Positions 24,372 through 32,885 of a DNA stretch of 64,000 nucleotides are shown piece by piece. The stretch is from Cercozoa sp. M6MM. Taxonomy: Eukaryota > Protista > Endomyxa: Ascetosporea. Each line of letters opens with the position of its first letter. The stretch's first letter is position 1. The notes beneath the pieces are model-generated. The model was not told where the DNA came from, searched no databases, and was given only the letters and a program-made list of their open reading frames with translations. Made by a program: the position numbers and the translations under genes. Location: assembly GCA_040357565.1 (NCBI GenBank), contig JBDODJ010000001.1. One strand, 5' to 3'.

Positions 24372-27300
24372 TCACAGACCGGTGTGAATCTGCTCGGCCT
24401 CGACACCGCCAAGCGAGGGCAGCAAACGCGACATGTTACTGTAGACGGCGTCTTGTTGCCGCACGGCAAGCCACCTGGACGTCAGAGTATAAATAGTGAC
24501 TAAATAAGAAAGGCAGGGTGTTAGAAAGGACCAATACAGCACAAACACGATAACGAGCACGATGCAGAAGAACTCGCGATAACGCCGTTCCTGTCGGTCG
24601 CCTTTGAAGGCCTACGAACACGCTCACTGCAAGAAATACGTTGGACATGGATAAGTTAAGGGTACAGCCAGGGCTCGTGCAGCAAGGCGTAAGCGACGCA
24701 CACTCTTGGGCATCAATACCGGGTGACGTTGCAGCACGCGGCATCTGGCCTGTGTGCACTTGTGTATGAAAAGCACAAGCAGCACGGACACAAGGAAACG
24801 CGAAGTACGAGTGAAGTCTCGTCGAGTTGCGGAATCTGCGGAATGTTGGTCACACTCGGTGCCACATCGACTGGATCGACTGTTGAAACACAAATTATGC
24901 TTAAACAAACACACAACTTTCCAAAGTGTAGTATACTTCCAAGCTGCTCATACAGCACGTGTTCAATCTCCTGCGACTGCGTTGATTCCAAGTCGAACTG
25001 TTGCGCAACCTGCAGACAAAACTCACACTTACAAAAAAAAACAAACAAACGCAGCGTATGAAACATGAAAGTACAGGTGCATCATCGGGCGGCACAACCA
25101 CTCGCGTGTCCAGCAGTCGACTTGGAAGACGGTTCTCGCATGCTGAACGAACCAAGTCGTCTGGCTGTCGGCACACGCACACCACAGTAAATATACATTA
25201 GCAATACGGACAATGAGAAAGGTGCCTGTAAAACAGTACCAATAGACCAAGGAGTTGCCACGACAGTTGCGTCCACAAGGAGTGGCTGTTCTCACTACAC
25301 AACACAAACACACATCGAACAGTATGAGACAGATGCCAACCTGGGTAAGTGTACTCTGTGAGTGCACGACGTGCCACCGAGAGTGCCTCCTCGAAGGCGC
25401 TGCTCTGCGTTGCCAGCGGTCGCAGGAGCGGCACAAGGGTCTGCTGCGCCAGTTGTCGGCACTCTTCCTCCTCGTTGGGCAACAGAGGCTGCCAAAGAAT
25501 AGGTCGGGAGTATTAATCAATGGGCATTGTGCTACCTGATCCGGACATTCAACAATCTTGGCAGTGCATAAACCGTGCTGGTCTGCCTCGTGTCGCAGGC
25601 CACACACCTGTACAGTCAGAGGAGCAAACTAATGGATACCAACACATACCAACACACACAAACAGAAGGTACAACGACACGTCGCTCTGCGATCGAGTTA
25701 GTCCACACACGTCCGTCGGGCAACACTCCTGTGCAATGGGAGCAAGCTCAGACACCGATACTTTACTATGCAGTCAGAGGATACGCAAGTGGCGAATGCG
25801 GCACAACAGTCCAACGCCGACACTATCGCTTCGTGCCCACTGTACCCACACACACACCACAGTGTACAAGCACACGTTGGGTTGAGATGGACAAAGTGCT
25901 GCTACATTGGGCATCACGAGGAATTGCTGACTGTTGTCCATGGCCAGAGTGGCCAGCGATCGGTATCGACGCTCGTACAGGTGCAGCACAAAGGCGCGTC
26001 CGATGGCGAAAAAGTCTTCCGACAAAAAGACGCCAAAACGCTCCTCTTTCTTCAGTCGACGCACTGCAAAAAATATGAGTAGTTTTAATGAAGGTATCGA
26101 TACACAGAGGGTACAAAAGGGAGGTAAAGAAGTAAAGAAAGTGAAGAAGAGGATACCAGTGGACTGTTTGGCACGTCGCTCGTAGGCAGCGGCAAAGTGC
26201 GTCTCCAGCAGACTCAGCAGAACTGCGTTGGTGGCGTGTGTCAGCGCATCGATGCGACAGCGCGAGCGACATAGTGGACAACGCTTGCGACGCTGCAGTG
26301 CTCGGTGAATGCACTCTAATAGATAGCAAAGGTAAGGGAAGGTTAAAAACAATACAAGGCAAAGGGTGGTACCGCGACAGAAGGTGTGTCCACACGGCGT
26401 CGTGATCGGGTCGAACAGCAGGCCGAGACACAAGGAGCAGTTGAAGTCTTTGGCAGCTACCGTGGCTTTCATATCTTCCTCGTCTTCTTCTTCCGTGTCT
26501 TCGAGTGCCAGTCTGCTCAGTTTGAGGTGAGATTAAACATGCGAGGGTACAAGGCTGGGGTAGAATGGTAGAGTGCTACTTGGGCAAAGGCGTAAAGGGC
26601 GTAAGTGGCGAGTGAGCACCCGACATGCCAAATCCCTGAGACGGCACCGACGACGTTGCCGATGGTGGCACTGCGAGCATGTTGGCCGAACCGCTCTCTG
26701 AAGAACTCGATGACGACGTACTCGCCGTGCTGGGAGAGTCCACGCTCGGCGTCTCGGGCACGCGTGCCGACGAGGCGACGTCTTCCGGCGCACGCGAATT
26801 CTGATTGCGTTCTTCGGTTCGTCTGGCTACACAGAAAGTAATTTGTACAAATTAAGGTGCACGCAAGAGCAAAGTGCACCCCTGTCAGGCACTTGGAGTG
26901 ACGCGAGAGCCTTTGCATTCGCTCGGCGTCGCATTGGCGACTCTTGTCTCCTGCAAAAAAAGCAATAAGGTTATTCTCACCACACAGGCAAACTCACATG
27001 TGTGTGTGTGTGTGTGTGTGTGTATGTAGAATGCAAGTTACGCTGGTTCCATCAGAGAAGACACAGACGGCGCACATACGTTGACGTTGAACACACCAAG
27101 CGATGAAGAGCGACGGTGGTGGCGATTGCGCCGACCCGCCGACGATCCGCGTCGTGATTGCAGCATGCTCCTCTGCGGCACACGCACAGAATATCACTCA
27201 CTTGCCCTCAAATACACTGTTAGTGTGCAAAAGTGCAGTGTGCCGCCAGAAACCGTGCAACCACAAGCCGACCAGAGGCGATTTGCGAGCAAACAAGCGA

Positions 27301-27445: not shown

Positions 27446-28111
27446 TCCTCGCCCCAGGAAGCGTCAGTCTGCGCGAAAGGTACCCAAATCTCAGAATCCG
27501 TTTTCCACGCACGTGAGACTCAAAATCGCGGAATACCAGTGTCAGCGAACCACCGGCGTTGCTGCGGTTTACAGAGCACACAGCGAGAAAACTTGGCGGT
27601 TTTGTTATGATTTTTAGATTTTGTTTGTCCGATCAGCAAATTTGAAATAAACAGTGACTCGGAAAAAACGCGGCGCAAGGCGCCGTTTCAACAGCACTGC
27701 ACAACTTAAAAAAAATGTGCAATACGTGTTGAATTACAGCAAGATGCGGTCCCAGTCAGCGATCGATCATCTTTTTTCCAGAACGGGTTGACTTTGGCAG
27801 TCCGAAGTGATCCGATGATCGCAAGAAGTGCTCTACAGCCGTGATCATGTTACAAGAAGTAGTTGTTCTTGGCAGGTTGTTCTTGTACTATCGACACTGA
27901 TTACTGCTTTACAATAGGTTTGGCTAGTGTACAACAACAACTGTCAACCGGCAGCCGGTCAAAGCGGGACGATTCAAAATACGCCGATTTCAAAGGCTTC
28001 ATCTTCAACGAGAGACCCCAACCGCTCCAGGCGACTTCTCGCGAGCTCGCGGCTATGAAAACCCAACTTCTTGACCTAACTTAAATGATACATTAAACCT
28101 TGGTTTGTCAC

Positions 28112-30949
28112 TTACCGTCCCGAGTTGTCTTCGATCACAGTTTCCTCGGAGATCATGCGTGGGATACGGGACAGTATCATGTCAAGAATTTTGCGCATTT
28201 CAGGCGGCAGTGAGTGGATGGTATTCCTCACGATAAGTTGCAGTATTTCGTACTCTGCTTCGTCGAATGCACTCGCTGCCATGGTTCGATCGTACGAGAA
28301 CGACGCTCGCATTTGTGACTGCAATTCCTGCGTCATCTTCGCATCGAGGTTCACCGCATTCGAGGCGTCTGGTGCCAAGTAGTGGTCGAAAATCAGGCGT
28401 GCCAGAGCCTGTGCACGTCGGTACCGCCGAGTTAGCATGAGGCGCCGCCACTCTTCGCAGTGTGTCCAGAACGCCAGGTTCTCTTGACTGAAAATCTTCA
28501 CGAGTGCGTCAGACACAAACTCTCGTGCCACCGGCTATAGCGAGCGCATGGAGTAGACATGAACATAGGCGTATGCAAAATAGTTGGTACCGACATCAAG
28601 TATTTCTTCATGTACTGCGCTGGCGTCCACAAGTGCGCTTCACGTGCGACATCTTCAACGTCTGCTTCAGCACTAGCGAGGAGTTCGCGAGTAGACACCT
28701 GAGAGCGCAGCACCGACATCCGCTGGGCGCGTGAGTGACGGTCGTGAATCAACTCTCGGAAGGGGGTAAGCAAGTGCGCCATCAGGATGAATACAAAGTC
28801 ATGCGGGAATCCAGGCCTGGCGAAGATGGAATACATGGAAATACAGGGGAATAAGGGGTGAAATATGCCGATGTGGTGCTATGTGTGGAATGTTGACGAT
28901 ACCTGCAAAACCCGATGATGTCCATCTCTGCTTGCTGCATTCGAGACAGTACGCGAATGCGTCTCTCAAAAATCGCAGTGTTTCGCTTCAGTCGATCGTT
29001 GTTGCGCTCAACGCAACTGTCAAGCTCATTGCGCGCCTCTTTGGTATGGTGCAAACTCGCACCACACATGCCAAAGCAGACGGCACACGCAGTGATCGCA
29101 AAGACTACCCCAAGCACATCCGACTCGAACCGTATCCCGCCGAGAGTATCCTCGGATGGGGTCGTCAAGAACGAAAAGGTTTCGATCAACACTGCTTTCT
29201 CCCCTACGCGCCCAATCGCCAGCAGCACCGACAACACGAAACGTGTCCACACCGAAGTTGGAGCATATGCCATAGAGAGCCAGATCGACACAGGCACCGT
29301 GATTGCAGTGTACACGCACAAAGCAATCAGCTGCCCAACCTCGAACTGTTTGTTGCAGTTGACACACGACACACTGGCGATCGTCAGAAAGTTGATTCCG
29401 AGGGTGACAGCAGCACTTGCACCTCCGATAAGCAAAACGCTTTTTGACTTGAAGAAAACCTTCCACGGGATTTGTCGCAGTGCATGCGCGAGGTTGTAAG
29501 CACTCAGTTCTTTGTCTCCTTCGACAACCGACGACCGTGCACCCCGTTTGTTCAGCCGTTGAACAATCTCCTGCACTTGTGGCGACTGTTCGTCGACGTC
29601 ATGCTCTGACTCATCGCTTGAGTCTTCTTCGCTTATCGGACGCTGTGGCGATTCAATCCTTGGTTTTGTCATGAGACGCTTCAGCGACTCGCTGACTTTT
29701 GTCATCGCAATGATAAACCTGCTCCAATTGCAACCAAACCAACGATTGAAACCTGATTGCTGGTAAGAACAAATAGAATAGACGTACAAAGGTATGTAAA
29801 AGACGATTGCTGCGGCCGAACACGCCACCAGAACCGCATTGAAGGCTATGCGCAGGTCCAAAGCGGCTTCGGCCACATCATCTGACACAGACACCTCGAT
29901 GGTGTCTATCACAATGACGCTTGCTGTCCAATCGCAAACGAAACCAAAAGCAATTGCGCCGAGAACAAGCCACATGCGAGCGTCTCTCGTAGTTTGCGAC
30001 GATTCGTATGCTCGAGTTGTTCGACGCTCGATCTCTGTGAAGAAGGCTTGCTCAAACTATAAATAAATTTTCTATCGTCCCACGATAAGTGTAAGCTGTG
30101 ATGTCTGCATGGCACAAAGGTGAGTCACCTGAATGAAGAGCGTCCAAAAGCCTACACAAGATACTGCGAAGGCCAGCGGCCACAGTGTCGTGTCGACTTT
30201 TCTCTCCGTCTTTTGCCTAAAAACGCTTGAATTAAAGCAGCCAAAAGCATGCAGTGAAGCCGGTAGATATACCCGTATTTGATTTCCTTTGTGCATACAA
30301 TTGATGTGCCAGACCACAGCCCTGAAGGCAGACACACTCGAACTACCGAACCTTCAGTTTGCGCATACCCCACGTCACACTCCCAGACCTAATTTTTACA
30401 CTAACGCCATGGAACGAAGCGCAAACATTGGTATTGATATCCTACGAGCCAACATACACAGCGAGACCCAACGAGGGCGAAGTCGGTGCAACGCTGAGAT
30501 GCCTCTGCAACGATCAACGCGTGTGCAGGAGCGACAGGGACTTCTACACAGCTTCGATCGAAAGGGATTTTGTTTGCAGCGAATCGTATATCCAATTCGG
30601 TCAGATCCGAAATGGCGCGGACGTTCATCTTTTTCAAATCCCCCAAGCTCATGAAGAGTGTTCTCCTGCTCATGCCCAAGGTATCGATTGTTAATATTGT
30701 ATCAAAGCGCGTAATCATAAACTTCAGAGACAACTTTGGTTACTGTAAACCAGGTTCCATACTCTCCGTGTGCTCTGGGCCAAGAAGCTGAGCGATCTGC
30801 AATCCCTGCACACATAAGGCGAATTAAAAGCAAACCAAAAATTTATAAATTTTACATCAGTGGGCATGTATCCGCTGTGATGCTCGGTAAAGTTAATCGT
30901 CCGTATGACTCCGTCGATTATCAAAGAACTCAAGGCGCCTAGTTTAGGT

Positions 30950-30999
<50 letters not shown>

Positions 31000-31009
31000 N
31001 NNNNNNNNN

Positions 31010-31059
<50 letters not shown>

Positions 31060-32476
31060 TACCTGCAATATCGTCTCCCTGGAATGGATCGGACGCATTC
31101 ATCTCCAAAGTAATGTTCATGGCATGAAGTAAAGCCCAGCAACTGTCAAAGGCGTCCCAAACTCGATACTGCTGGTTGTACTGTAACTCCAGTGTTGCGT
31201 CCTCAACCTTTGTTCTCAGGTTATGAAGGACAGTTTTCGCAAAGTCAGATGTCACTCCTTGCTTTGGGGAGATCGTCAGTGACATCTCGGAGGGTTTCAC
31301 GAGTTCCAGTATGCTACTCGCGAACCCAAACAGAGGCGCAAGTTGTTCGATGCCTTCTGCCACAGTGGGTTCGAGAATGTACTGGTATCCTTCCCCGGTC
31401 ATGTTTAAGGTCTCGGCTGCTCTGTTAATATACCACAGGGGGACTGTTGAGTCGGTCAGAAGATTTGTTCAACAAACATACTTCATCAAACACGGTGTTG
31501 ATCTCCACCCGAAAGAGATAAAAATACGCGCATCCAGTTCCTTCAAACGTTTCATTGCTTGAATACACGCCAAAAGATCCGACAGGATCAACGCCTCTGT
31601 TGGAGCCATTGTCTGTGTTCCCACTACAGTGATGTTCGAGCTTTCGGCCAGGAGAGCAAACCTCGACATCGTTCCGACGACGGTAGTGTCGCCCAGCAAA
31701 GCGACCCGACGCCAGTCGAATACTTGGACAAGGTCTCGTAAACCTGTCAGTATCGTGTCTGCAAGCATTTTCCAAAATAGAACAATAATAACAGCGCCCC
31801 TGTAAGTGACGTATGACCAATATCGGCGAAATTTGAGTAGTAGTGCGAGTAATCTTGGACATTCGCGAGCGTGTCCGAAGTTGCATAGTGAGAAATTGAT
31901 GGGATGCGAGCTTCACTCAAAATCAAAGCCACCGCTTCAATCGTGGCGAGGTAGGAATTGCCTGCAATGACCGCTGAAATGTCAGGCGGAGGTGCTGCAA
32001 TCTGAGAGGCCACATCGGTATCGGTGATGTTCTTTCCCAGCCAGGCAAATGTAGCCTGGAGTCCTTTGGAAAACCTGCATCAAAAGCCTTGCAAGGCAAG
32101 ACCTTTTGACATTAAGAGAAATAACTTACGTGTCAAATGTAGTTGCGTCGTAGATTTCGACTTCATCGAGTTGTACTCTCCACCCTGGCAATAGTTTGCT
32201 CGACCAATCTTCGCCCAAGTACCCTCGAGTTGAGGGAGGGTCATTCGCCATCTCAATGCACAGCTGCACGGCTTGTCTCTGCAAAGGTCCGTCGAATCCG
32301 GACAGCGGATCACTTAGTCCTTCGAACAAATTAAAATGCAAAGTGCAAGGCCAAGACATCAAAAGAGACGCAGACTTACGTGTGAGGTATCCAATGCGAA
32401 CATCTTGCTGTGCGTTGACGTGTTCGAAAGCACGGAAGCACAGAAACTGTAAATTTACAACCCTCCAGATGAGCAT
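28112..32476 (-). CDS. Receptor-like protein: Venus-flytrap (PBP1/ANF-receptor) ectodomain + multi-TM MHYT-like module + coiled coil + RGS domain
   Basis: VFT: DVRIGYL..AVQLCIEMAN..ISAVIAG..IPSISHYATSDTLA..LVQVFDWRRVALL..LKELDARIFI..MTGEGYQYI..VWDA. TM region at about 29040-30190. RGS: MKKYLMSPVAREFV..FSQENLAFW..ARLIFDHYLAPDASNAVNLD..FDEAEYEILQLI. Start approximate. Confidence 0.7.
30953..31057 (+). repeat. (GT)n microsatellite with gap, intronic
   Basis: Directly visible. Confidence 0.95.
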
Positions 32477-32885
32477 TAAGCACTTGAAGTAGATTGTGAG
32501 CCCTGGGTTTGCTCACATGGTTGCGTTCTCAGTTTAGTCACTTCCTTGCAGCACGTTCCGCGCGGATGTCAGAATGGTATGTATACTGGGTGATGCCAAC
32601 AAAGCAGCGATTATCAAAAACCAATGAATATCTCGATATCCGATGACTACCTTTGCCACCACACGTTTTACTATTCCGACATGTACCATCTCAGCTGTAG
32701 TTGTCCTACTTGCAAACTCACGCACAGGAAATCTCCAGTCGTCTGGGAAACTGCATGCCGATTTGTCTGTCAGTTTCTGTAGACCCATCAATAATCTGTG
32801 CACGATTTCTTAAAGTAAAACGTGTGCCTGCATGTGCATGTACTGAATAATCGTGTTTCCAGTTGTAGATACGCCTTAAGGAGCC

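Follow-up and report, generated by a model that had tools for sequence, protein, structure and literature searches.

Does a single protist gene join an extracellular ligand-binding domain to an intracellular domain that ends G-protein signals and, if so, by what kind of membrane domain are the two connected? The question is raised by a minus-strand locus at positions 28112-32476 of the 64,000-nucleotide stretch of contig JBDODJ010000001.1 analyzed here (the window; C1:424240-488239 of the draft genome, which comprises 23.6 Mb in 2235 contigs). The genome is that of Cercozoa sp. M6MM, a marine amphizoic amoeba of the Apofilosa (Rhizaria) from fish gills, whose current name is Lemnamoeba sinaloensis (PMC11069148, PMC13746701). 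A first-pass annotation, made from the letters of the sequence alone, had read the locus as a Venus flytrap domain, a membrane module of bacterial MHYT type and an RGS (regulator of G-protein signaling) box. We found that the first and the last of these elements are encoded, in this order and in one open frame, at either end of a predicted protein of approximately 1180 residues, and that they are separated by a Sushi domain, seven hydrophobic helices and a linker. The reading that we favor, with moderate confidence, is that of a ligand-modulated receptor carrying its own GTPase-activating protein (GAP) domain, whose ligand binding, GAP activity and direction of regulation we infer.

Gene model, flytrap, Sushi and RGS domains

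By splice modeling, the locus was resolved into 13 colinear exons, separated by 12 introns that all have GT-AG borders and measure 50-124 nucleotides (Table 1). After splicing, 1179 codons can be read in frame from the ATG at 32476 to the TAA at 28114-28112, with no internal stop. The colinear minus-strand exons proposed in the first-pass annotation were thereby recovered, and all the peptide motifs quoted there were found by six-frame translation in the minus-strand frames of 27800-32800. For the species as a whole, a mean of 13 introns per gene, a mean intron length of 82 bp and 99.5% GT/AG usage have been reported (PMC13746701), figures that the 13-exon model matches in its intron number, intron lengths and GT-AG use. 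The 3' part of the model can also be compared to a public protein, MES1906948.1 (hypothetical protein MHM6MM_000162, Cercozoa sp. M6MM, 483 aa), the only database protein that matches the membrane exon. Its sequence is the one encoded by exon 11, starting at Met118 (ATG 29703-29705), and by exons 12 and 13; its introns are the last two of our model, and it stops likewise at 28112. Because of this identity the stop and the two previously proposed in-frame joins, CR/PGF (GT-AG intron 28902-28817, 86 nucleotides) and LMS/PVAREF (GT-AG intron 28590-28535, 56 nucleotides), are independently supported.

An assembly gap (N at 31000-31009) lies within intron 5, bordered by (CA)n on both sides. Being entirely intronic, it affects no coding bases in the 13-exon model. 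Simple-sequence repeats are abundant in the M6MM genome and fragment its short-read assembly (PMC13746701). A hidden exon in the gap is not needed, as exon 5 reaches position 305 of the 353 in the ANF_receptor profile and exons 6-8 add approximately 84 residues before the Sushi domain. The join of exons 5 and 6 lacks confirmation from the paralog described below, which is too diverged there.

Domains were identified with Pfam, using cut-offs of 25.4 bits for ANF_receptor, 20.7 for Sushi and 23.9 for RGS. The Pfam and all other searches were run exon by exon rather than on the joined protein of 1179 residues, at a lower sensitivity for the flytrap. ANF_receptor was matched by exon 3 (20 bits, E 3.8e-4, profile positions 52-96), exon 4 (16.3 bits, E 5.1e-3, positions 110-182) and exon 5 (21.9 bits, E 1.1e-4, positions 196-305). 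Three matches in profile order across consecutive exons are not due to chance, and the flytrap ectodomain of the first-pass annotation thus stands. A sequence search of the PDB with flytrap exons 3 and 5 returned no meaningful match. The Sushi domain (PF00084), which the first-pass annotation did not contain, was found by Pfam on exon 9 alone with 21.7 bits, and its Cys...Cys-x-x-G-Y...Cys...W...Cys pattern is visible both in the translation and in the alignment with the paralog.

At the other end of the protein, exon 13 matches RGS (PF00615) with 45.4 bits (E 1.2e-11), the public protein doing so with 43.2 bits, so that the RGS box noticed earlier is a clear one. The exon also matches PDB chains of RGS16, RGS3, RGS12, RGS4 and RGS7. 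In the PDB match, SQENLAFW and VNLD align with SEENLEFW and VNID of RGS16; in the complex of RGS4 with G-alpha-i1, the SxENLxFW and VNLD segments contact G-alpha. The linker that connects the RGS domain to the membrane, a coiled coil in the first-pass annotation, can be described only as a charged, helix-prone stretch, in which the helices predicted by AlphaFold2 are of low confidence.

Possible substrates for the RGS domain are plentiful, as at least 16 G-alpha loci in the genome score above the Pfam cut-off. About 14 RGS loci add to a G-protein repertoire that is large for a genome of 23.6 Mb. A predicted complex of one of the G-alpha proteins (MHM6MM_001737) with the RGS exon scored 0.37, and one control 0.20, a result that speaks neither for nor against binding. 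The best RGS match of the genome (70.9 bits; C1:76000-85999, at approximately 83 kb) is located shortly downstream of a tubulin-tyrosine-ligase gene, and neither a membrane nor a sensor domain was detected with it.

The seven-helix bundle and its topology

Between the Sushi and RGS domains, seven hydrophobic segments were identified by the Kyte-Doolittle method, exon 10 contributing one and exon 11 the other six, in keeping with the roughly seven helices counted in the first-pass annotation. The numbers of lysines and arginines are 5, 17 and 1 in the predicted inner loops and 10 after TM7, as compared to 0, 1 and 0 in the outer loops; the loop between transmembrane helices (TM) 3 and 4 is charged and 119 residues long. 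Given an odd number of helices and positive-inside loops, the flytrap and the RGS domain should be situated on opposite sides of the membrane. The predicted topology, i.e. flytrap outside and RGS inside, fits the loop charges as well as the distribution of N-glycosylation sequons (N-x-S/T): the exons of the ectodomain have six, the last 215 residues of the protein none. The cytoplasmic RGS domain assumed at the outset is accordingly also what is predicted here.

The bacterial-type MHYT scaffold, by contrast to the other proposed elements, had to be abandoned. No PF03707 match was obtained on exon 11 up to E 10, and the whole genome likewise gave none at E 0.1, though bacterial control genomes were matched. 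The [ML]-H-[YFW] motif is absent throughout, and none of the predicted helices contains a histidine, the four of exon 11 being placed in loops or after TM7. Nor is there any two-helix repeat, since the three helix pairs, aligned locally with one another, scored no better than shuffled sequences (z values of -0.36, -0.01 and 0.44).

Class C was the other candidate family. The membrane exon gave no 7tm_3 (PF00003) match up to E 10, and a profile comparison by hhalign with the 7tm_3 open reading frames (ORFs) of the same genome returned a probability of 0.8%, in line with the earlier claim that the bundle is not of the class C type. No other Pfam family was matched by exon 11 either, even at E 10. 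A phmmer search of the membrane exon against 1.84 billion representative proteins yielded only the match to itself. When the linker and RGS part of MES1906948.1 served as the query of a word-based search, it likewise matched no protein but itself. The ESM Atlas contained no usable match for the membrane exon, and no relative was found in a scan of metagenome contigs. For now, and as far as sequence tells, the bundle is an orphan seven-helix module that is neither MHYT nor class C, and it is best explained as a putative lineage-specific helix bundle of an unclassified type.

These searches bear directly on the main rival to the receptor-GAP, which is a diverged G-protein-coupled receptor (GPCR) of class C type. 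Such a protein would act as an exchange factor, and the tethered RGS domain would merely sharpen or self-limit its own signal. Class C receptors have this layout of a flytrap followed by seven helices, and GABA-B receptors also join Sushi domains to a flytrap, GABA-B1a being a carrier of Sushi domains. The genome itself contains ordinary 7tm_3 genes, some of them beside ANF_receptor exons. The combination of flytrap and 7tm_3 is a conserved layout of glutamate receptors, and GPCRs are found together with seven-transmembrane (7TM) RGS proteins in several lineages (PMC3971589). The M6MM bundle, however, resembled not even the class C bundles of its own genome in the profile comparison, and the cysteine-rich NCD3G linker (PF07562) was not matched by Pfam in any exon, its position being occupied by the Sushi domain. 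We therefore regard a disguised class C receptor as unlikely.

As to the ordinary class C receptors that coexist with this gene, their 7tm_3 matches reach 119 bits, and ANF_receptor exons adjoin 7tm_3 exons on the same strand at C829, C13, C94 and C1:7-12 kb.

Transcript structure, paralog and weighing of the evidence

The public protein MES1906948.1 covers TM4-7, the linker and the RGS domain, while the flytrap, the Sushi domain and TM1-3 are omitted. Its start codon, ATG 29705, falls in the long loop between TM3 and TM4. This raises the possibility of two transcription units, one of them giving a product made of flytrap, Sushi and TM1-3, unless that part is an unexpressed remnant, and the other a separate protein of 483 aa. 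Transcriptome reads were used to train and update the public annotation, but its pipeline included jaccard clipping, a procedure by which transcripts can be cut (PMC11069148). Furthermore, the 117 codons immediately 5' of the public ATG are open in the same frame and encode TM2 and TM3, two helices that are conserved in a paralog, and the introns around exons 8-11 measure only 56-78 nucleotides, too short to house a promoter.

The paralog is a divergent one, located on the minus strand of contig C576 (L034) at about 5600-1588, and has ANF_receptor (in two pieces), Sushi, seven helices, a TM7-linker block and a PVAREFV motif in the same order. Its TM1 to TM4 are encoded in one ORF (L034:3101-3769) and the part from TM7 to the C-terminus in another single ORF. 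Both Sushi halves likewise share one ORF, to which exon 8 (z 11.2) and exon 9 (z 3.7) align at adjoining positions. Single ORFs of the paralog thereby bridge the joins of exons 8/9, 10/11, 11/12 and 12/13 in the gene studied here. Its Sushi domain scores 18.7 bits (profile positions 1-50), ANF_receptor was also matched by Pfam, and the TM7-proximal linker shares 31% identity over 63-64 residues. The family has two members only in this genome, and a genome search for further ANF_receptor or 7tm_3 loci that adjoin an RGS locus returned none. With the order of domains thus repeated and TM1-TM4 undivided in the paralog, MES1906948.1 is probably a 5'-truncated annotation. Two transcription units appear quite improbable, and a single full-length transcript can be inferred with good confidence.

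A number of observations weigh against the receptor-GAP as we propose it. All three ANF_receptor pieces individually score below the Pfam cut-off. The N-terminus and signal peptide of the model are uncertain, as the signal from ATG 32476 is weak; a start further upstream is possible, with in-frame first exons within 32480-32800 (e.g. ATG 32689 with a donor at 32586) that provide a better hydrophobic stretch (WFLIIAALLASP) than the N-terminus at ATG 32476. An AlphaFold2 model of the bundle from the single sequence of exon 11 was unusable, with a predicted local distance difference test (pLDDT) value of 39 and a predicted template-modeling (pTM) score of 0.25. A transcript-trained annotation that starts inside exon 11 could reflect a real shorter transcript. 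In the C-terminal domain of the paralog, the only other member of the family, no RGS domain is recognizable by Pfam or hhalign, and GAP function is hence not conserved in the family; this paralog may have degenerated or been put to another use. Finally, the segments of an RGS domain that contact G-alpha are S-x-E-N between alpha3 and alpha4, an asparagine between alpha5 and alpha6, and D-S-x-x-R between alpha7 and alpha8, and the third of these is altered in the M6MM protein, which reads LIVRNTIHSL where two RGS domains of the same genome read LLE(K/T)DSIPKF.

The last two points, along with the loss of GAP activity in some RGS domains (PMC3971589), would also suit a non-catalytic RGS scaffold as in G-protein-coupled receptor kinases or axin, with the flytrap receptor signaling by another route, but the retained SxENLxFW and VNLD segments and a Pfam score far above the cut-off make this very improbable.

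At the 3' end, the TAA stop overlaps a strong GTAAGT donor, and a 63-nucleotide intron (28115-28053, ending in CATAG) would lead to a candidate 14th exon with 25 extra residues. Further downstream, the minus-strand ORF 25774-26472 contains a C3HC4 RING-finger pattern (CSLCLG...CGHTFC) and probably belongs to a separate neighboring gene.

Table 1. Features of the predicted receptor gene in the window; positions are given 5' to 3' along the minus strand.
Feature	Position	Strand	Content or remark
Exon 1	32476-32380	-	ATG 32476-32474, weakly hydrophobic N-terminus, flytrap start (DVRIGYLT)
Exon 2	32319-32130	-	Venus flytrap ectodomain
Exon 3	32074-31818	-	ANF_receptor (Pfam)
Exon 4	31758-31482	-	ANF_receptor (Pfam)
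Exon 5	31421-31063	-	ANF_receptor (Pfam)
Intron 5	31062-30939	-	(CA)n microsatellite, GTATCA...AACTAG, holds N 31000-31009
Exon 6	30938-30856	-	Flytrap ectodomain
Exon 7	30805-30744	-	Flytrap ectodomain
Exon 8	30665-30458	-	Flytrap end (30665-30551, 8a) and first Sushi half
Exon 9	30388-30273	-	Second Sushi half (Pfam)
Exon 10	30216-30129	-	TM1
Exon 11	30056-28903	-	TM2 to TM7 and linker start
Exon 12	28816-28591	-	Linker
Exon 13	28534-28112	-	RGS, stop TAA 28114-28112
Candidate exon 14	28052-27974	-	Would replace the stop; public model ends at 28112
Flytrap, exons 2 to 8a	32319-30551	-	ANF_receptor / periplasmic-binding-protein type 1
Sushi/CCP	30550-30293	-	Exon 8 second half and exon 9, split by intron 30457-30389
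TM1	30188-30132	-	Exon 10; Kyte-Doolittle, 19-residue window 1.73
TM2	29963-29907	-	Exon 11; Kyte-Doolittle
TM3	29849-29793	-	Exon 11; Kyte-Doolittle
TM4	29435-29361	-	Exon 11; Kyte-Doolittle
TM5	29330-29274	-	Exon 11; Kyte-Doolittle
TM6	29240-29184	-	Exon 11; Kyte-Doolittle
TM7	29117-29061	-	Exon 11; Kyte-Doolittle
Cytoplasmic linker	29060-28591	-	Exon 11 end and exon 12, interrupted by intron 28902-28817
RGS Pfam match	28498-28226	-	Within exon 13

A putative receptor-GAP among known receptors

If the receptor-GAP reading is right, a small ligand would close the extracellular flytrap, and the Sushi hinge and then the helices would relay the conformational change; like other flytrap receptors, the protein would probably do so as a dimer. 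The access or the activity of the tethered RGS domain toward GTP-bound G-alpha at the membrane would then be altered, and the receptor would thereby set the rate at which the G-protein signal is shut off.

The first-pass annotation had named no characterized protein of this architecture, and a full-text search for RGS together with flytrap or ANF_receptor likewise retrieved no paper describing a flytrap-7TM-RGS fusion, although its coverage was partial and a prior mention is possible. 7TM-RGS proteins as such are already known to be common among protists, and are reported in plants, many bikonts, chytrids, filastereans and ichthyosporeans (PMC3971589). The M6MM protein is thus most likely a 7TM-RGS receptor of an unusual kind, with a bundle of neither class C nor MHYT type, and not a new category. 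That it instead represents a new receptor class, in which ligand sensing by a flytrap directly gates the protein's own G-alpha GAP via seven helices without kinship to known GPCR families, is a tentative and rather doubtful proposition; in this amoeba, rich in G-alpha and RGS genes, it would then be one of several sensor-RGS receptors acting mainly at the switch-off step. Pfam spot checks at five other loci (C3, C25, C419, C422 and C20) identified RGS in four of them (none on the tested ORF of C422), and a globin or other sensor domain in none of the ORFs tested there.

The resemblance to a bacterial MHYT sensor is solely that of a multi-helix membrane module ahead of a cytoplasmic output domain, and the M6MM bundle fails every defining feature tested. 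The oomycete GPCR-bigrams also join an N-terminal seven-helix receptor to a C-terminal signaling domain, but theirs are catalytic (PIPK, cyclase, kinase or phosphatase) rather than RGS, and no flytrap is described for them (PMC6033456). The class C orphan GPR158, together with RGS7-G-beta-5, is a seven-helix receptor whose output is to bring an RGS GAP to the membrane and so end G-alpha-i/o signaling (PMC8611064). GPR158 has no flytrap, and RGS7 is a partner protein that it recruits, whereas the RGS domain of the M6MM receptor is part of the same chain. With the class C receptors proper, i.e. the metabotropic glutamate, GABA-B and calcium-sensing receptors, the protein shares an ANF_receptor flytrap, seven helices and a cytoplasmic tail, and it differs from them in the lack of 7tm_3 and NCD3G matches, in the Sushi domain between flytrap and membrane and in the RGS domain on the tail. 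Coupling of a flytrap, it appears, does not require a membrane module of recognizable class C type.

Plant RGS1 is not known to have a flytrap or Sushi ectodomain, whereas the M6MM protein carries both ahead of its helices. Ligand regulation of 7TM-RGS proteins is still debated, since plant RGS1 has no recognizable ligand-binding domain. With plant RGS1 and the 7TM-RGS proteins of protists and early-branching opisthokonts, the M6MM protein shares the layout of seven N-terminal helices and, behind them in the same chain, a cytoplasmic RGS domain, alongside G-alpha (PMC3971589). The searches related the sequence of its helix bundle to no known family. The locus, which also exposes a probably 5'-truncated public gene model in the poorly sampled supergroup Rhizaria, would add a genuine flytrap to the 7TM-RGS layout and so allow a direct test of whether a GAP can be gated by a ligand, both end domains being expressible and assayable.

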